A stretch of 62,777 nucleotides of DNA, counting the filler, from Choristocarpus tenellus KU-1152 (lineage: Eukaryota; Protista; Phaeophyceae), in the NCBI GenBank assembly GCA_964200185.2. It is 8 parts of 8 records of this genome, joined end to end, with 100 filler letters (N's around TTAATTAATTAA, not from the genome) between each part and the next. Parts side by side here need not be neighbours in the genome. Positions count along the whole stretch, not along the records: positions 17,463 to 28,060 come from CAXNAD020002842.1; 7 more parts are not named here. The stretch is one strand, 5' to 3'. How positions within the stretch are numbered: the first letter of the stretch is position 1; the number at the start of each line of letters is the position of its first letter. This document shows, piece by piece, positions 3,301 to 28,060 of this stretch. The notes beneath the pieces were generated by a model. It was given only the letters and a program-made list of their open reading frames with translations. It did not search any database and was not told the DNA's origin. The translations under genes were made by a program, and so were the position numbers.

Positions 3301-4290
3301 GTGTAAAATAGCGTGTGCAAAGTAGGAATTTGTAAGGTTCCTCCTTCATTTAGATCGCCACTCCATTTTGATGAGCAAATAAATGTACGCCGAGGAACAA
3401 TGCAACTCAAATATATTAGTGCATACGAATTATTGAGGCAAGCGGAGTCAGAGGATGAGAGCGGTGGGGATAGAATTATTTCATGGACGATTCTACGCAC
3501 AACCATACCTTCTTTCTTCACGTGCTCGCCCGCGAAGCTACCCATCGACCTGTCCCAGTCCACTTCCTTCTCACTGAGGAGCAGCGAGTACGTGTGCTCT
3601 CCAAGCATCTAAGTACCAAGGTGTGCCAATCGGTCCGCAGGAAAGAAATTGAGGATTAGTCGTAATATGGAATATTGATTTGATACTCGAGAACCCAACG
3701 TAGCGAAAGAGGTTTTGAAGATCAAAATCACAGTTGGAACGCATTGTGGATCCAACAGTGGTCGAAATAATACGAAAATGAAAACAGCACCCAAGCAGGC
3801 ATTTCCACCGCTAATTTTTCGTTGATGTACAATAATTTGATCTCGACTGCTATGTAGTCTGCTTTCATCCTTACACACATTAGTATATCCATTCAAAATC
3901 ATGATCCAGTCACCTCAGGTGTGCGGCATGCAAGAGAAATAGGCACCACCATACCATGTCCAGGTCCAGAATCTTCATCCATAAGGCCCACCACATGGTG
4001 CGGGAGACTGTAGGCAGCTCGCAGCAACCTTCGTCAAGATGTTGACCATGGTTGAGGTGGATTTGGGGGTTCAACTTCTCGTGTTGCTGAAGCTGAAGGA
4101 AAGCACTTTGGACGAAAGTGTTTTGCTCTTGAGCAATGATTGGACATGGGAAATATTATTGCCTGATCTGCTCAATAAAATGAGGAAAGCTAGCTCACCG
4201 CGATAGCTCCTCTGGGTTTAGCCCAGTGTAGAGGGCAATGAAGTGAGACTTCTCATTGTGGATAACCCTAACGAATTTTGTCTCCGCCAT
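346..4290 (-). CDS. Conserved unknown protein, multi-exon, 3'-incomplete, with repeated helical motif
   Basis: Phase-consistent GT-AG exons 4199-4290, 3914-4028, 3509-3608, 2930-3282, 2350-2514, 1084-1152, 346-471. They give MAETKFVRVIHNEKSHFIALYTGLNPEELSRLLRAAYSLPHHVVGLMDED...VVPISLACRTPEMLGEHTYSLLL..., then two related helical blocks (LLSEQERNVLEEMV..LVYSALSVAVFKQDMHFLAAVLKD; LEKEELTLLNYLI..VMGACSIYLADNDLMRLMDTLKK). Last visible exon ends in a donor site. Confidence 0.75.
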
Positions 4291-17462: not shown

Positions 17463-17866
17463 CCGGGGTCGAGCGATGTAGATGTGTCCTGCACCTCCGT
17501 GGAGCCCATCCCGGCCATGGCGATGTTCTCTGACTGTAGATGAGGCGCAGTAGCTGCTGGGACCATAAACTCGTGAAAAAGAAGACAGAAGGTTAGCGGA
17601 GGAGGCAGCCATGGTACGACTGATCAACATACAGACCATAGTACATATGGATTATGTTTCGAGTTTAGTATTACAATTAAAATTCTCTAACAGTTGGCTT
17701 ACCTGTAAGACTAAAAATAATGAATAAGCAACAGAAGAAACCCCATAAAGGTTACTCTTCTAATTTCAACCATGTAATCATGTTCAGCAATAGAGAACCG
17801 TGTAAGGCTTCACCTTCCTGTTTTCACCACTGATAAATAGCATTACCTCCCAAGATAAATTATACA
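17463..17866. mobile_element. Copia fragments: family A RT piece (17463-17533, minus), family B pol piece and partial family B LTR (~17640-17866, plus)
   Basis: 17463-17533 is the reverse complement of ~22045-22113. RRLAEEAAMVRLINIQT resembles RRSVEEAAKVQLVNVRT at ~27310. 17640-17866 is the reverse complement of LTR B at 20136 and 25836. Confidence 0.8.
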
Positions 17867-17869
17867 GGA

Positions 17870-19115
17870 TCACCTGTTTAGTTGACTACTCAACAATCCC
17901 ATTGCTCTGTGGCGTACGTGGGGGGTTCTTGCGTCATTTTACGCCCCGCTCCCAAACACCTGTTTCCCTATCGGTATCCCTGCACCTATGTGTGTGGAGC
18001 TCCATAGCCCTCTAGCTCCTAGTTGTTTGCCCCGTGACCTCCGTGGTCAGGTACAAAGAGGACGAGATGATGACTGTCTTGAGGTGATAGTATGTGAGGT
18101 CCGGTGCTGTGGACAGCTACGTGAACATCTGTCGCATGCTGTCCCTCATGCCTATGATCGGAGTCCTTTTCGTGGCGCGTTTCTTCTAGCCGCCTCCAGC
18201 TGCTCGTACTCTGTCCAGACGTGATCGAGACGGATAACGAAGTCGGCAGCGTCCTCCACCGACGAGCAGTACATGTCACGCAGCTTCATACCTATGAGCT
18301 GCATGAGCCGCTGCACTGCAGCGCACTGCGCCTATAACAAACCCATGAATATTACTCTTGCTTCTGCTGGTATTAGAATTAGCACCACTACCAACATTTG
18401 CCTTATCTGTTTCTTTGCCAATAAAGCCTTTTATCCATGTTCCATAATTCATATCATCATCACCAGAAGCAACACCGCCATAAAAACTATTTGCTCTATT
18501 TAGACTCTAGATACATTCAGGATATTTCTGATTAATTGCCTGTTTTGGCTTTTAAACTTTTCTGCTGTCGTCTCTACTCTTGGCTTTAATGCATTTACAT
18601 CAATTAAATCTTCTCCCTCATACCGCAGATAAAAGTGAGAACTGCGTATAGCTCCAGCATCACCCCCGCAAGTCTGCTCCAACTCAAGCCAGGCTGCCCT
18701 CCTGTCGGGGCTGCCGTTATTTTCGTGGGTGCTGACCACCATCGCTGTGGCCCCCTCGTGCGTGGCCTGACCCAGCAGGAACCACAAGGCCTCGCGATGG
18801 TTGATGTACTCCTCGTACATGCTGCGTTCCCCAAAGGATGTATCAGCCGTAGGAGGTGCCGGGATGTGGTATGCAGGTTGGAGGATGCGGTACAGTCCCT
18901 TACCGCCCGCATAGCTCACCAGCACCATCTGCCATTCATTCTCCCCACTTCTCTCTTGTACGCCCAAGCGCGCCAGTCCATAGTGGCAGCTTACGTGGGT
19001 CCACTTCCATACCTGTAAGGCGCATAACAAGAGCTTTTCGAATATAGAGTTTTTTTATTTATGTGGTATGAATGAATTTATTGGTGGAGTGAGCACCATC
19101 CCTCGAGGTGAGGGG
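17870..19115 (-). mobile_element. Ty1/copia family A: partial LTR, PBS and degenerate gag interrupted by foreign DNA
   Basis: LTR 3' part 19029-19115, PBS GTTATGCGCC, ATG at 19010, gag WQMVLVSYAGGKGLYRIL...SPDRRAAWLELEQ. Homologous to 19601-20135 and 23763-24399. Confidence 0.85.
18326..18506 (-). pseudogene. Bacterial (Rickettsiaceae-like) Sca/OmpA-family autotransporter fragment
   Basis: Minus-strand frame not in the ORF track: LNRANSFYGGVASGDDDMNYGTWIKGFIGKETDKANVGSGANSNTSRSKSNIHGFVIGA. Fits the recalled rickettsial autotransporter linker/beta-domain start (NR...GV[AS][AS]GD....G.W...F.G......K....G..IG.D). AT-rich with A/T-ending codons; absent from the other two gag copies. Confidence 0.75.
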
Positions 19116-20135
19116 TGTGCAATATAGGCTGGGTAGTCTATAGGTTCTTAGGTATTTGGTAACCAGTATTATGTAACAAATTGTTGACTGAGTGGATCAA
19201 TTGTCAATCACTTTCCATACGCTTAGAGTAGTAGGTTCGAATCTTGATGGCTTGATTTCTTATTGCTGCTTAAGGTAAATGGCTGACACAGGACGACTGA
19301 CAGAGAACGACTGACGTATTGCGACTGACATAGACATATTGCGACTGATACAGATACGTTCAGACGTGTCTGCTGACGTGCGCAATAGATAACGAGGTAG
19401 AGCACTCCCTACCTCGAGGGATGGTGCTCTCTCCGCTAATTAATTCATCCATACCACCACATCAAGCAAAAATTATATTCGAACTCTCTTTGCACAGATT
19501 ATGAGCCTCACAGGTATTAATTCATCCATACATACATCATAAAGCAAAAACTATATTCGAACAGCTCTTGTTGCACAGATTACGAGCATCACTCACAGGT
19601 ATGGAAGTGGACCTACGTAAGCTGCCACTATAAAACGGCGCGTGTGGCATACAAGGGAGAAGTGAGGAGATTGGTAGATGGTGCTGGTGAGCTATGCGGG
19701 CGGTAAGGGACTGTGCTGCAACCTCCGACCAGCATACCACATCGCGGCACCCCCTACGGCTGATGCATCCTTTGGGGAACGCAGCGCGTACGAGGAGTAC
19801 ATGAAGCATCGCTTGTGGTTCCTGCTGGGCCAGGCTACGAGGGGGGCTGCAACGATGGTGGTCAGCACCCACGAAAATAACGGCAGCCCCGACGGGATGG
19901 CAGCCTGGCTCTTGTTGGAGCATATCTATGAGGGGCGCGCTGCACTGCAGCGACCCATGCAGCTCATAGGTCTCGAGATGAAGCTGCACGACATGTACTG
20001 CTTGTGGGTGGAGGATGCTGCTGACTTCGTCATCCGTCTCGATCACGTCTGGACAGAGTACGAGCAGCTGGAGGCGGTCAAGGAGGACCACGCCAAGAAG
20101 GGGGGCTCTGATCATCGACATTAGGGACAGCATGC

Positions 20136-21295
20136 TGTGCAATTTACCTTGGGAGGTAATGCTATTTATCAGTAGAGAAGACAAGAAGATGTGGAGCCTT
20201 ACACGGTTCCCCATTGCTGAACGTGATTACATGATTGAAATTAGAAGAGTGACCTTTGTGGGGTGTCTTCTCATTGTTTATTATTATTTATGCTTCCTAC
20301 CTAAGTCAACGGCTATGTCAAAGTAGTTGAATACGGAATAAATACCCGTACATAATCCCATACATAATCCGGATGTAATATCTCATTAGTTACATCACAT
20401 GCACTCAATTCAACACAATAATCTCATATACACAAAATGAGGTACACCTCACTATTGTCCTATTTTGCACACTTCCCCATGAGAGCGCAGGCAAGAAAGA
20501 TATTTGCTGGAACTCTCAAACCTAGAACATCTTATTGTGCACAGTCCCCATTCTGCACACTCCCCCATGAGAGTTGAAGTAAAAGATGTCAGATTGATTC
20601 AACTCTCACACTCATCACATTTATCTTATCAACGCAGTAAAAGAACACTGATGGCTTGAACTCGAACATACGTCATTCATCTAGTCAACACATTGTCTAC
20701 GAAGTCTTGTACCTGCTTATTTAGATGCACCAACATAGTGATGTACAATCGTGTCCAATGATTATCCCTAACTTAGTGTATGAGTAAAATCTGAACCAGT
20801 CCCCTTTTGCTGTTTCTCTGGCGTATCACTCAGTCCCACAGGCTTGATTGAAGCCTATCATAATTGAATGTTTCGTACATCCTCTCGTTGAGTGAAGTCC
20901 TTTGCCACCAATCTGGTCTTGAACTCTTCAATGGTCCCCTCAGCTGTTGGTTTTGTCTTAAAATCAGACTTGGATTTGTTCCCCATGTCAAAACCTCTCT
21001 CTACGGATGTTCCTTTCATCCATTGTTGTTCCATCTTCTCCATTGCCGCTTGCCATTATCGTGTATCAGGCCCCGTGAGTGCCTCTGATATAGAAGCTGG
21101 TTCTTGATGGTCTGGAGTAGATATTATTTACTTCCCAGACGTGTAAGTCTTGTGCAGGTAGCCCTTTACTGACAACCTTCCTCGCCAGTGTGCCTCTGAT
21201 ATAGAAGATGATTCTTGATTATCTGGAGTAGATATTTTTTACTCCTCAGACTTAAAACCTCTTGTGCAGGCAGCCCTTTGCTGACAACCTTCCTC
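20136..21295 (-). mobile_element. Ty1/copia family B internally deleted copy nested in family A
   Basis: LTR 20136-20471 (TGTGCA..TGCACA) with adjacent PPT (reverse complement of CTTCCCCATG), RNaseH end, and RT start KTRLVAKDFTQRED. Homologous to 25836-26770. Confidence 0.85.
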
Positions 21296-22017
21296 ACTTG
21301 TGTGCCGTCCACAACAAAGGAGGCCCTGAGGGGGCCCAGATGCCGAGCAGTGGCAGGAGGAGGCCATCGAGAAGGAAATGGCAGGGCTATGGCAGAAGGA
21401 GACGTTTGACAACGAGGCCCTGCCCATAGGGAGGAAGGCGATCAAGATGCGATTCGTCTTCAAATCAAGCGCTCCGGGGGCAGGACGGTGGAACGCTGTA
21501 AGACACAACTCATATCCCGCTACTTCACCCAAAAAGCAGGGGTGGATTTCTTCAAAACATTTATCCCAGTGGTTGGCTACGACACAATACGGAGCGCCAT
21601 GTCCGTCGCAACGTACAAAGGCTGGAACATTGACGCCCTGGACTTCACACAGGCCAACCTCAATGCAGATCTATAGGAGGACGTCTGGCTGGACCTTCCA
21701 GACGGCCAAACCTTCAAGGCAGAGGAGATCATCTATGGACTGAAGCAGTTAGCCATGGAGTGGTATCACAAGCTACACGGCACCATCCTAGCAGAAGGGT
21801 GGACGAGCAGCCAACATAATGAATGCACCTACTTCAGGAAGAGTGAAGACGGACGCATCGCCATCCTCACCACCAACGTGGAAGACACTGCCACCACCAG
21901 GGACTTCACGGAGAAGATCCAGAGGATGAGGGCATCGCTACTGGAGAAGTAGGAGGGGAGGGACCTAGGCACGCTGGACAAGTTGATTGGGATGGGCATC
22001 ACTGTGGGTGTTAACGG

Positions 22018-23200
22018 CATCACCCTGCGACCAACCTCTACTCTCAGAGAACATCGCCATGGCCGGGATGGGCTCCACGGAGGTGCAGGACACATCTACA
22101 TCGCTCGACCCCGGCATGGACCTCTCTGCCAGGCACGACAACGAGAAGGAACTGAATCCCACCATCTATCTACCCCTATGCCAGCATCATTGGCCAACTC
22201 ATGTTTCTAGCAGGCATGACTCGCCCGGACCTGGCCAACAGCGTTCGCGGACTGGGGAGCAGGGCGGCGTCTCCATGCATGCGGCACTGACGTGGACTGC
22301 AACATGTTCTGCGCTACATAGCAGGGACACTGGACGTCTGCATTTACTATGGTGGGGGGACTGGTGATATTGAAAGAGGGGACGAAGAGCTCTTGGTGGG
22401 GAATGGGGATTCCGACTGGGGCATCGACTCCTAAACACGCAGGAGTGTCACGGGTTATCTATTATTGTTGAACGGATTGCCTGGCGCTCCAAGCTTCAAG
22501 GCGCCGACACCCTCTCCAGCTCCGAGGCAGAGTGGACGGCAATGGCATACGGCATGCGCTACAGCATTTTCCTTCGAGGCATTCTGGGGGAGATCGGCAC
22601 ACTACATCACCCTGGACCAACATCTACTCTCAGAGAACATCGTCATGGCCGGGATGGGCTCCATGGAGGTGCAGGACACATCTATATGACTCGACCCCGG
22701 CATGGACCTCTCTGCCAGGCACGACAACGAGAAGGAACTGAATCCCACCATCTACCCCTACGCCAGCATCATTGGCCAACTCATGTTTCTAGCAGGCATA
22801 ACTCGCCCGGACCTGGCCAACAGCGTTCGCGAACTGGGGAGCAGGGCGGCGTCTCCATGCATGCGGCACTGACGTGGACTGCAACGCGTTCTACGCTACA
22901 TAGCAGGGACACTGGACGTCTGCATTTACTATGCCATAGTCGGGGAACTGGCGATATGGACAGAGGGAATAGGGAGCTCTTGGTGGGGAATGGGGATTCC
23001 GACTGGGGCACCGAAAGTCAAATGTGCAGGAGGCGTCACGGGCTACCTGCTTCTTTTCAACGGATCGCTGATCACCTGGCGCTCCAAGCTTCAAGGTGCC
23101 GTAACCCTCTCCAGCTCCGAGGCAGAGTAGACGGCAATCGCATACGGCATGCGCCATTGCATCTTCCTTTGAGTCATTCTGGGGGAGATCAGCGCACTGC
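22018..23200 (+). repeat. ~585-bp tandem duplication of the copia RT-end/RNaseH segment
   Basis: CATCACCCTG..CTACTCTCAGAGAACATCG.. starts at ~22018 and again at ~22605 and runs through ATTCTGGGGGAGATC. Confidence 0.9.
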
Positions 23201-23762
23201 AGGAACAGACTCCCTGTTTGTGTGGCAAACGTGGTGCTATCGAGGCGGGCGGTCAGCATCACAAGCTTAAATGGGAGAACGAAGCACGTGGACATGAATG
23301 AAGCTGAAGTGCATCAGAGAATACATGGATCAGGGTCTGTTCCACGTACGGTATGTTCCTACATTAAAACCGCTGGCCGACATTTTGACCAAGTCTTTGC
23401 TCAAGAACTTCTGATTTTGTGCATTCTGTGCTTTTTCATCGGGGGTGAGCTTTGTCAGCAACTTTGCCACACGCTCATGGGGGAGTGTGCCATATAGGCT
23501 GTTAGTATGTAGGTAGGAGTCGAGAGATGGGTTCGAGTCTCTTTGGGCTCGTTCGTTTCTTTTTGGTTTGCTACAAGTGGTTAATGCAACTACTACGACT
23601 GACGCAGAACCTCTGACACAGACATGTTCTGACATGTCTGCTGACGTGCGCAGTAGATAATGAGGCTGGGCGCACCCCCTTCGAGGTATGGTGGTCACTC
23701 CGCTAATTTATTCATTCATACCACATAAAGCAAAACTACAGTTTGAACAGCTCTTTAAAACA

Positions 23763-24749
23763 TGACCTCCATGATCATGTACGAAGGGTAAGACATGATG
23801 ACTGTCTTGAGGTGATCGTAGGTGAGGTCCGGTGCTGTGGATAACTGGGTGAACACCTGTAGCATGCTGTCCCTGATTCTTATGATCAGAGCCCCCTCTT
23901 GGCATGGTCGTCCTTAGCCACCTCCAGCTGCTCGTACTCCGTCCAGACATGATGACGGATGACGAAGTCGGCAGCGTACTCCAACGATGAGCAGTACATG
24001 TCCCGCAGCTTCACCTCGAGAGCTATGAGCAGCATGCGCCGCTGCACTGTAGCGTGCCCCCCGTAGATTTGTTCCAACTCGAGCCAGGCTGCCCTCCCGT
24101 CGGGGTTCCCATTGTTCTCGTGGGTGCTTACCACCATTCCTGCGGCCCCCCCTTGTGGCCTGGCCCAGCAGGAACCACAAGGCCTTACAATGCTCGATGT
24201 ACTCATCGTACGCGCTGCGTTCCCCAAACGATGTATCAGCCATAGGAGATGAGTGGATGTGGTACGCCGATTGGAGGATGCGGTACAGTTCCTTCCCGCC
24301 CGCATAAGTCAGAATCGCCATCTTCCATTTTGCCCACTTCTTCCCTGTACGCCCTCGCGCGACAGTACATAGTGGCAACTTACGTGGGTTCACTTCCATA
24401 CCTGTGAGGCTCGTAACCTGTGCAAAAGAGCCTTTTCGAACTAGAGTTTTTGCTTGATATGGTATAGATGAATGAATTAGCGGAGTGACCACCATCCCTC
24501 GAGGTGAGGGGGTGCCCTGCCTCGTTACCTACTACGCACGTCAACAGAACATATCAGAACATGTCTGCGTCAGTCGCACGGCGCCAGTCATTCTGTGTCA
24601 GTGGTTCTGCATCAGTGGTTTTGTGTCAGTTGTTACGCACCAGTTGTAGTTGCGTCAGCTACTTGTAGCAATCCAAGAAGAAACTAATAAGTCCATCGAG
24701 ACTCGAGTCCATGACTCCTAACTTACTCACTACCACCTTATATTGCACA
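23763..24749 (-). mobile_element. Ty1/copia family A: LTR (24419-24749), PBS and gag
   Basis: Minus strand TGTGCA...TGCACA LTR, then GGTTACGAGCC, then ATG at 24399: MEVNPRKLPL...WAKWKMAILTYAGGKELYRIL. Confidence 0.88.
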
Positions 24750-25305
24750 TATATATACCACCCAATATCTCTTTTTAACTCGAACTATGTCTAGAGCATT
24801 TGGTCTCTTGCCCATATTCTTTATGAACATGCGTTCCCCCATCATCTACTTGGCAAAGTCCGTGAAGGGCACTGAACTGTGTTAATTTGAGACCTTAAGG
24901 TTTCGTACACAATTCCCATCATCCACTGTTGCTTCTTGATTCTTCAAGCAGAGATTATTCAGAACCCAAATGGTCAATCCTCAAACCGAGCTCTCAACTA
25001 CTGGGCACCAATGTGCAGCCACTACAACTACCCTAGAGATGAAGAGATAACCATAGAATGCCAGGATTCTGGTCCGTCCAACGCACCAATGAGCGTGAAT
25101 AAGATGTATGGTTGAGCTTACACTTCGCTACCATCCACCCTGTTGTGAACTCCTAAATTCCCAGATATGATACCTCTCTGTACAGGATCTATCATATATC
25201 TGGCGAACGACTGATCAACGACAAAATCCTACGCAGTCCTGATTTGAATTTCCACATACCCAAGGAAGAATCTGTTGTTTCGTTAGTTAGAAGTGATCTC
25301 TGTGC

Positions 25306-25565
25306 AACGAATGGCTTTATCTAATTTACTTGCAAGTAATATATGGTCTTCCTCATTACAAGAGATCGCGCTGACCAACTTATCGTCATTGTCCATTCTG
25401 ATATCAATTTTTCCATTTAATTGAATTTTATTTCAAATCAGATAAATCATTTCGACGAATATTTCCTTTTGCCGTAGCAAAAATAATATGCATATTATCC
25501 CATTCATCATGATTCTCAGGCATAGGCATTACATTTGTCATAGTCTTCCGATCATGCAATGGAAG
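25306..25565 (-). pseudogene. gyrA: Bacterial (Rickettsiaceae-like) DNA gyrase subunit A C-terminal fragment, frameshifted
   Basis: Minus strand: LPLHDRKTMTNVMPMPENHDEWDNMHIIFATAKGNIRRNDLSDLK-(+1 nt at ~25430)-KIQLNGKIDIRMDNDDKLVSAISCNEEDHILLASKLDKAIR. Collinear with the recalled Rickettsia GyrA beta-pinwheel region (PENQDEWD..FATAKGNIRRSDLLDFKKIQSNGKIAIRLDEDDKL..HILLATKAGKALRF). No introns, AT-rich. Confidence 0.88.
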
Positions 25566-25835
25566 ACAAAAAGAGCTGTTTGAATAGAGTTAATTAGTGG
25601 AGTGAGCACCATTCTTCGAGGTAAGGGGGGTGCTTTGCCTCGTTATCTATTGCGTACGTCAGCAGACACGTCAGAACGTGTCTGCATCAGTCGCACCTAC
25701 GTCACTCGTTCTGCATCAGTCGTACCACGTCACTCGTTCTGCGTGACTAGTACTGCGTTACTCGTCCGAAGTCAGTCATCAAGTAAAAAAAAAAAACTGT
25801 AGAGATTCGATCATATGAATTTGGGCGTACCTAAG
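25566..25835 (-). mobile_element. Copia family A LTR (degenerate, solo-like)
   Basis: AAAGAGCTGTTTGAATAGAGT..AGTGGAGTGAGCACCATTCTTCGAGGT.. matches the LTR at 24419-24749 in the same orientation. Confidence 0.8.
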
Positions 25836-28060
25836 TGTGCAATTTAACTTGGGAGGTAATGCTATTTATCAGTAGTGAAGATAAGAATGTGTGAAGCCTC
25901 ACACGGTTCCCCATTGCTGAAAGTGATTAAATGGTTGAAATTAAAAGAGTAACCTTTGTGGGGTGTTCTCTCACTGTTTTATTAATATTTGTGCTTCCTA
26001 CCGAAGTCAACGGTTGTGTCAAAGTAGTTGAATGCAGAATAATAACCTATCCGTAATCCCATTCATAATAATCCAGATGTACTATCTTATTAGCTACATC
26101 TCTCATACACAGAGTAAGGTACACCTCAATATTGTCCTATTTTGCACACTCCCCCATGAGAGCGCAGGCAATGAAGGGTTGCTGGAACTCTCAAACCTAA
26201 AGAGTGGTAAGAAACAAAAAAATGGTTCAACTCTAACACACATCACAATTATCCTGTCAATGCAGTAAAAGAACACTGATTGCTTGAACTCGAACATACG
26301 AAGTCTTTTACCTGCTTGTTTAGATGCACCAATACAGTGGTATACAATCGTGTCCAATGATGATCCCTCACTTAAGAGTATGGGTAAAATTTTGAACAAG
26401 CCCCCTTTTTCTGCTTCTCTTGTTGGATATCATAATGAATGTTTTGTACATCCTCTCATTAAATGAAGTCCTGTGCCACTAATCTGGTCTTGAACTCCTT
26501 AATGGTTCCCTCAGTGTGTTGGCTTTGTCTTAAATTCAGAATTGGATTTCTTCCCCATATCAAAGCCTCTCCTCCCTCTATGAATGTTCCTTTCATCCAT
26601 TGATACTCCATCTTCTCCATTGCCGCTTGCCATTCTCGCGTGTCAGGCCCTGTCAGTGCCTCTGATATAGAAGACGGTTCTTGATGGTCTGAAGTAGATA
26701 CATATTATTTACTTCCCAGACTTACAAGTCTTGTGCAGGCAGCCCTTTGCTGACAACCTTCCTCGCCAGGGTGCCTGTGATATATTGCATGCTTCATTTC
26801 ATGTACCATTGCTGTCCATTTCGCTTCTGATGAAGATGTGGTTATAGCTCCTTGCATCTTGGATTTCCATGCAATTGGTGCCTCATTTAATAGGATTAGG
26901 TATCCCGTCATGCTTCGTCTTGAAACAGTGTCATTGCCCCAGTCATAGTCTCCATACCCGACCAGGCCCCCCCATTGTTCATTTCACCACGAGCAGGATA
27001 GTGCATCCCTACTTTCATGGTGCCTAATAGGTATCGTAGAACATGTTGCAGCCCTTTGCTGACAACCTTCCACTGTTTTTCTTTTCTGGCTCCAACCCTA
27101 GTCCAGCTAATTCCTCCGCCTATTTAGACGGTGTCGCTCTCCTCTGGCGACAAACGATCTGAAGTTCTCCTTTACCTCCAGAATTGGAGCATATTCCTTT
27201 GAAAGAACAAGGACCAATATGCTTGATCAGTCCAGAGTTTAAAGATCTTCTGTTGGCCCTGATCTCGTCTCTGGTAGGGGATCCTGTTGTAATATGGTCC
27301 GTACGTTGACCAGTTGTACCTTGGCCGCCTCCTCCACTGACCTTCTGTGTTCTCTTTCATGATATATGGTCCCAGCGGCTAGAGTGCTCCCAGGCTCCCC
27401 GTGGTTAGCTCCTCCTTTCCCTTCTGATGGAGGCTTAGTTACTGCTCCTGCTAATGTCCTGCTCCCAGCAATTGCTTTTCTCATTCCATAAGCAAGAAAG
27501 AATCTTGGGGTGTCCACTCCAATCCATGGGCATGCCCCCTCAGGGACAAGTGTTGTGACGACTGCTCCAGGTCCATAGGCAGATTATTGAGCCTCAGGCT
27601 CAGGCTCAGGGTTGCAGCTCCGGCTGCTGTATTGCCTCGATAATCTCCCCCATCTATTCACAGGGTCCCCGTGCTCAATATTCGGCATTGCGTACCAGGT
27701 ACCCAAACTAACCCCCAACCTCCAGTTCTTGCTTGTTATCGATCGTATCGTATTCCATGTCTCCTTAGCCTCCAGCTTCCCATAACCCCCTCGTCATTTT
27801 AGAAGAAGGAACCATAACACCTTGTTCTTCTTTGTGTGTGGGCATGTGCCGTACGCACTTCCTCTCCCTAGATGAGATGGTGGTGGTGGGTGTTTCAGGA
27901 ATCTCTTAGTCCCTCGTTGTAATCTCGTACAAACCCTTTCTACCAGCGTAGGCGATCAATGACAGTCTCTAGGTTGACCAGGTCTCCAATGACCTCCCTG
28001 TGGCCCCCCCCCCGCCCCGACACAGATCGGCAGACCACACGGCCGAACTCCCGTCACCCC
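25836..28060 (-). mobile_element. Ty1/copia family B, deleted/rearranged (gag, pol linker, RNaseH, RT start, PPT, 3' LTR)
   Basis: LTR 25836-26148, PPT, RNaseH SMTGYLILLNEAPIAWKSKMQGAITTSSSEAKW (26705-26911), gag WSTxRLSLIAYAGRKGLYEI (~27920-27985). Confidence 0.85.

Follow-up and report, generated by a model that had tools for sequence, protein, structure and literature searches.

A decayed gyrA fragment, probably from a 'Candidatus Megaira'-like bacterium, within an LTR-like repeat of Choristocarpus tenellus KU-1152

The window analysed here is a stretch of 62,777 nucleotides, filler included, from Choristocarpus tenellus KU-1152 (Phaeophyceae; assembly GCA_964200185.2). The locus of interest lies in the part taken from CAXNAD020002842.1 (positions 17,463 to 28,060 of the window, hereafter the piece), where a short and broken fragment of a bacterial gyrA gene sits in a nest of old repeats comprising a gag-like block X, a copia-like block Y, an LTR-like repeat termed T′ and a fragment of a Ty1/copia reverse transcriptase (Table 1). 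The last of these scores above the Pfam cut-off and identifies the piece as repeat DNA of a eukaryote, in support of a eukaryotic host with Ty1/copia elements. Motifs resembling copia-type reverse transcriptase and RNase H can be recognized by eye on the minus strand of block Y, which has no Pfam match. Block X has no Pfam match either, and protein searches found database relatives neither for block X nor for the reverse transcriptase ORF of the piece; a search for Rfam families and tRNAs found none, and two long ORFs, when looked up by exact sequence, were encoded on no known contig. The spacer at 24750–25299 matched no bacterial sequence and no family. Its reading as a continuation of block X was rejected, the local alignment score being no better than those of shuffled sequences. 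Two stretches of the piece, 18035–21203 and 23763–26784, are paralogous composite blocks (X + Y, 76–90% identical), the internal arrangements of which differ: in copy A an inverted X directly abuts Y, and in copy B it is the gyrA-bearing T′ repeat that adjoins this terminus of Y. Elsewhere, 22018–23201 is a tandem duplication with a unit of ~590 nt (88% identical, with blocks of up to 97%), which carries a 242-aa ORF without a family match.

The repeat T′ measures 270–380 nt and is present in at least four copies in the piece, in both orientations. Its termini read TGTGCAAT...TTGCACA and provide the 5′-TG...CA-3′ short inverted repeat by which LTRs are recognized; judging by these sequence features, T′ is a putative LTR of an LTR retrotransposon. 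The terminus of block Y, at 20136 and at 25836, bears the same TGTGCAAT. A motif, TGGTG(G/C)TCACTCC, is conserved inside T′ some 70 nt before its terminus (24480–24500 and 25600–25615, minus strand) and by eye resembles a tRNA primer-binding site. T′ has 14/28-nt tandem repeats in its interior, copy 4 included. The copy that begins at 19116 seems to be inserted into another, truncated T′ copy (19066–19120), and a 78-nt tandem duplication of 1.9 copies (19439–19592) spans the T′ 3′ terminus together with the start of block X.

Table 1. Features of the piece, in positions of the window
Feature	Position	Strand	Remarks
Candidate rOmpA-like fragment	18327–18659	minus	~333-nt AT-rich insertion in block X copy A; GC ~0.37
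T′ copy	19116–19497	plus	from repeat comparison
Ty1/copia reverse transcriptase fragment	21488–21673	plus	Pfam RVT_2, 38 bits against a cut-off of 31.6
T′ copy	23486–23757	plus	from repeat comparison
T′ copy 3	24419–24749	minus	uninterrupted, empty-site comparator; followed by gag-like block X
Spacer	24750–25299	.	550 nt, single-copy in the piece
T′ 3′ terminus resuming after the insertion	25300–25307	minus	reads TTGCACAG
gyrA pseudogene fragment	25307–25565	minus	86 codons of the C-terminal domain plus 1 extra base, ~260 nt
gyrA part 2	25307–25429	minus	41 codons, KIQLNGKIDIR...LDKAIR; 63–76% identical to Megaira-group GyrA
TAA stop	25428–25430	minus	made by the 1-nt insertion at 25430, in the frame of part 1
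gyrA part 1	25431–25565	minus	45 codons, LPLHDRKT...LSDLK; 80–84% identical to Megaira-group GyrA
T′ copy 4, body	25567–25835	minus	whole copy 25301–25835; 5′ end truncated where copia-like block Y abuts
Block Y	25836–26784	minus	paralogous to 20136–21203; terminus ...AAATTGCACA on the minus strand

Translation of the minus strand yields, in two frames, the peptides of the GyrA C-terminal domain from which the original prediction had started. The fragment corresponds to residues 613–698 of the 900–904-aa GyrA of the Megaira group and is collinear with one to two blades of the C-terminal β-pinwheel (PF03989; E. coli 1zi0, Borrelia 1suu). Its two parts are exactly contiguous in bacterial gyrA, as for example in locus L007 (4001–4135, then 4136–4258), and they align collinearly with the NCBIfam gyrA equivalog model TIGR01063, at positions 582–622 and 625–664 of 800. 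Part 2 also matches solved GyrA C-terminal domains as well as the Pfam family DNA_gyraseA_C, the latter with an E-value of 2.3e-4 and 21 bits, which is below the gathering score of 27. With blastn, positions 25566–25300 could be aligned to the fetched Rickettsiaceae loci with one 1-nt gap and E-values down to 2e-74, so that the match is far beyond chance. Homology of the C-terminal domain, collinear with the gene, thus assigns the fragment to gyrA. The predicted frameshift is there as well: it stems from an extra base at 25430, a T within a run of A that encodes KK in the bacterial genes. Compared with GyrA itself, the fragment retains 86 of ~900 codons, is frameshifted and lacks both the catalytic, N-terminal breakage-reunion domain and the open frame of a complete gene; it is a gene fragment that cannot make a gyrase subunit. 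Owing to the lack of a start codon and of a frame, and because it covers <10% of the gene, it is expected to have no function and no present-day role.

The search for relatives was carried out with part 1 against one genome per prokaryotic species, loci being retrieved through a shared exact 8-residue word, and against metagenomes. The two scans returned 52 genome loci and 76 metagenome loci, all of them gyrA of Rickettsiaceae or, more distantly, of Pelagibacterales. Top matches in the genome scan were 'Ca. Megaira venefica' and Rickettsiaceae MAGs (80–82% on part 1); the metagenome scan agreed with this, its best match reaching 83%, and no closer donor was found there. A whole-library HMMER search with part 2, a very short query, gave 20 weak matches, the best short ones at 60–62%. 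Over all 86 codons, the closest lineages of the Megaira group (M. venefica-like bacteria and lake MAGs) share 76–79% of the amino acids with the fragment, as compared with 67% for M. polyxenophila, 55–60% for other Rickettsiaceae MAGs and ~42% for Pelagibacter. At the nucleotide level, identity to the Megaira-group genes amounts to 77–83% over the same codons; with blastn it is 81% over 237 nt for locus L009 and 83% over 259 nt for the Logan contig L129. The contigs of the nearest proteins come from samples DRR496536 and ERZ25071359. That the matched genes are true gyrA is evident from the scores of L022 (1207 bits) and L007 (1199 bits) against the equivalog cut-off of 877, and among the best 120 relatives that the databases yielded for the L007 region are proteins named for Megaira endosymbionts of Stentor and Carteria and for M. 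polyxenophila.

Four of the MAGs, RXKF01, NVVL01, JAFLDA01 and MegNdeciBESST, have been treated as Megaira genomes (PMC10132079), and L008 (RXKF01), L019 (JAFLDA01), L021 (NVVL01) and L025 belong to the Megaira genomes of that study. In a maximum-likelihood tree of 258 aligned sites, the fragment is nested within the Megaira group. The branch that leads to it is long (0.44), and UFboot values are modest, at 69–73 for the group and 70 for the sister pair with L008/L017. The comparison covers loci that share an exact 8-residue word with part 1, and none of these came from named species of Rickettsia proper, Tisiphia or Orientia. Top identity and phylogenetic nesting both point to a donor of the Megaira group, and a 'Megaira-like' donor is therefore supported by best matches rather than by exhaustive comparison. 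The Rickettsiaceae affinity originally proposed for the fragment has in this way been narrowed down to the Megaira group. Megaira, a member of the Rickettsiaceae, inhabits the cytoplasm of protists and algae.

The sequence of the fragment bears the marks of a gene that has ceased to be selected. At residues invariant among 29 Rickettsiaceae, it differs at 5 of 38 (E7K, F44L, A54D, V66A and G82D), while real genes, when left out one at a time as controls, show 0–2 such changes. The replacements of KIAIR by KIDIR and of GKA by DKA, which the original prediction had singled out, are real and fall in columns that are invariant in all compared sequences. At columns conserved to at least 90% in the Megaira group, the fragment has 10 private changes among 147 (~7%), six of which hit second codon positions, as compared with 0–2 in real genes; the total of 10 is equalled by a single divergent real gene, L025, in which no second position is affected. 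The mean non-synonymous distance (pN) of the fragment, 0.141, is the highest of all, the others ranging from 0.064 to 0.129, and its amino acid identity of 0.75 compares with an average of 0.88 for bacterial pairs at equal nucleotide identity. Saturation of synonymous sites among the Megaira-group genes (pS ~0.77) would make a formal dN/dS on the branch of the fragment weak. Relaxed selection was judged by pairwise and leave-one-out counts. Frameshift, stop codon, altered invariant residues and second-position changes taken together indicate relaxed selection after transfer, and the fragment is, as had been proposed, a decayed pseudogene relic. Its GC3 (0.28) is still bacterial-like; together with the level of change of ~7% at otherwise conserved sites, this suggests that the insertion may be of moderate rather than ancient age.

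The edges of the fragment are sharp. In an ungapped comparison, identity falls to background (10–40%) just past 25566 and past ~25300, and the blastn alignment extends over 25300–25566, leaving the junctions ambiguous by 1–3 nt. A tblastx comparison of the whole piece with all gyrA loci found nothing beyond the fragment and no bacterial similarity outside 25300–25566. The fragment also coincides with a trough in GC content (0.33–0.34, against 0.40–0.60 around it). In the assembled sequence, the bacterial sequence thus has repeat DNA on both sides on one molecule, and the repeat sequence that precedes it continues after it. Read along the minus strand, the T′ copy at 25835–25567 gives CTCTTTTTG, followed by the gyrA fragment, which has the same orientation as T′, and then by TTGCACAG (25307–25300). 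This octamer occurs five times in the piece, where 0.57 occurrences would be expected, and always at a repeat terminus. Uninterrupted T′ copies end in CTCTTT(T)GCACAG (24418–24430, 19485–19497 and 19566–19578) and represent the empty site, as paralogues and not as an orthologous allele. By this comparison, the fragment interrupts T′ 6–7 nt short of the 3′ end, and TG/TTG (2–3 nt) is duplicated at the junctions; the insertion is short and precise and has occurred without loss of target sequence. The original prediction had the fragment start right where an LTR terminates at its 3′ end, a view that has to be abandoned, since T′ is read here along the minus strand and is interrupted before its terminus. 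The TGCACA hexamer that it had noted as identical to the LTR terminus is indeed present at 25301–25306 and is the end of the same repeat resuming. The fragment had further been placed between two co-oriented LTRs. Co-oriented repeats do lie at 24419–24749 and 25567–25835, but they are only ~60% identical and were rejected as the LTR pair of one (young) element.

Another stretch of the piece, 18327–18659, may have a comparable origin. It is a clean insertion, absent from the paralogous X copies at 24054–24058 and 19937–19922. Its minus-strand translation is frameshifted, and the sole NCBIfam match is to the Rickettsia rOmpA autotransporter, at the start of the autotransporter barrel (profile positions 1832–1881 of 2126, E-value 0.008–0.011). 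Searches of this stretch against Pfam and PDB, by plasmid tblastn, against the local loci and in a scan of viral contigs gave nothing. The evidence being weak, a second rickettsial relic at this place is plausible but unproven.

Taken together, these data make it likely that a gyrA piece of ~260 nt from a 'Candidatus Megaira'-like bacterium was integrated in the chromosome of a eukaryotic host, where it is now a non-functional relic. The combination of a Megaira-type gyrA, its decay and eukaryote-type repeats on both sides implies past contact with a rickettsial endosymbiont, and the past infection assumed in the original prediction is the natural inference from such a relic in such surroundings. 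Upon lysis, an endosymbiont residing in the cytoplasm would release DNA, some of which would reach the nucleus. There, it could serve as filler when a double-strand break within repeat-rich DNA was mended by end joining, and the captured fragment would then drift neutrally. We infer break-repair capture from the anatomy of the junctions alone, since a short and precise insertion in a repeat, with minimal duplication at the junctions and no target loss, is what end joining would leave behind. End-joining capture is the accepted route by which mitochondrial, plastid and Wolbachia fragments enter the nucleus.

Alternatively, the polymerase of a retrotransposon may have switched template to a bacterial gyrA transcript in the cytoplasm, so that the fragment became part of the LTR and could then have multiplied together with the element. 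The position of the fragment inside an LTR-like repeat, near the 3′ terminus and in the same orientation, would agree with such an event, as would the fact that the candidate rOmpA-like fragment also lies within a repeat element. However, the four remaining T′ copies of the piece lack the fragment, repeat-rich DNA is the likeliest landing place for any neutral insertion, and the short TG/TTG duplication fits end joining equally well; moreover, the status of T′ as a true LTR is not proven. We consider capture by a retroelement an unlikely origin of the gyrA fragment. An extension of this scenario holds that at least two independent Megaira-derived fragments, one of gyrA and one of the start of an autotransporter barrel, in different retrotransposon-derived repeats, were captured by reverse transcription and spread with the element, which seems decidedly improbable. 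If true, capture of bacterial transcripts by reverse transcription followed by spread would constitute a new route of gene transfer from bacteria to eukaryotes.

An assembly chimera or contamination, in which reads from a living Megaira-like symbiont of the culture were stitched into a host contig, would be conceivable because sequencing projects on algae and ciliates often contain Megaira as well (PMC10132079). Yet the gene, of 2.7 kb, is represented by just 260 nt, with host repeats on both sides, and the sequence of T′ resumes exactly after the fragment. A frameshift, a stop codon and five changes at invariant residues could not be carried by a live essential gene, the extra base is a T inside an A run rather than an error in homopolymer length, and no sampled bacterium exceeds 83% identity. 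An artefact of this kind is thus very improbable. Although the organellar gyrase of plants and algae is encoded in the nucleus, it is extremely improbable that the fragment is a pseudogene of the host's own nuclear, organelle-targeted gyrA, as its identity to Megaira genes (77–83% of nucleotides) equals that among Megaira genes, within which it nests, its GC content (0.33) and GC3 match those of the bacteria and not those of the flanks, and no further gyrA sequence is found on either side.

Integration of endosymbiont DNA into the host chromosome, the reading preferred here, has well-known counterparts. Nuclear transfers from Wolbachia in insects and nematodes were reportedly described by Dunning Hotopp in 2007, and Ricchetti et al. 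are said to have described nuclear copies of mitochondrial or plastid DNA in 1999. Inserts of Wolbachia or organelle origin arise by non-homologous repair with 0–4 nt of microhomology, are overrepresented in repeat-rich DNA and undergo neutral decay. The gyrA fragment resembles them in being a short piece of a cytoplasmic genome in repeat-rich DNA; it differs in its donor, which would be a Megaira-like bacterium living in protists and algae, and in a length that lies at the lowest extreme of the range. The nuclear genome of Volvox carteri contains fragments of rickettsial 16S, murB, ddlB and ftsQ (Kawafune et al. 2015, PMC4324946). As in the present case, Megaira-related Rickettsiaceae DNA is found there in truncated form in a eukaryotic chromosome, and the insert, which is interrupted by multicopy elements of the host, has been read as the trace of a since-lost endosymbiont (PMC4324946). 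The Volvox region spans ~9 kb, with 16S rRNA, murB, ddlB and ftsQ, and some of its frames are intact (PMC4324946), whereas the piece studied here contains one 260-nt piece of gyrA and perhaps one of 333 nt, each of them broken and inside repeat copies.

The gyrA fragment is accordingly a further example of an established phenomenon, already represented by Volvox, insects and nematodes, and it contributes a single additional observation on the hosts of Megaira and their history with it. It shows the entry of foreign DNA cleanly, with a precise insertion point within a repeat and paralogous empty sites for comparison, and it cautions against discarding such sequences as contamination. As a footprint, dated by its decay, that a Megaira-like endosymbiont has left in a lineage of eukaryotes, it illustrates how relics of this kind reveal hosts that were once infected, even after the symbiont has been lost.
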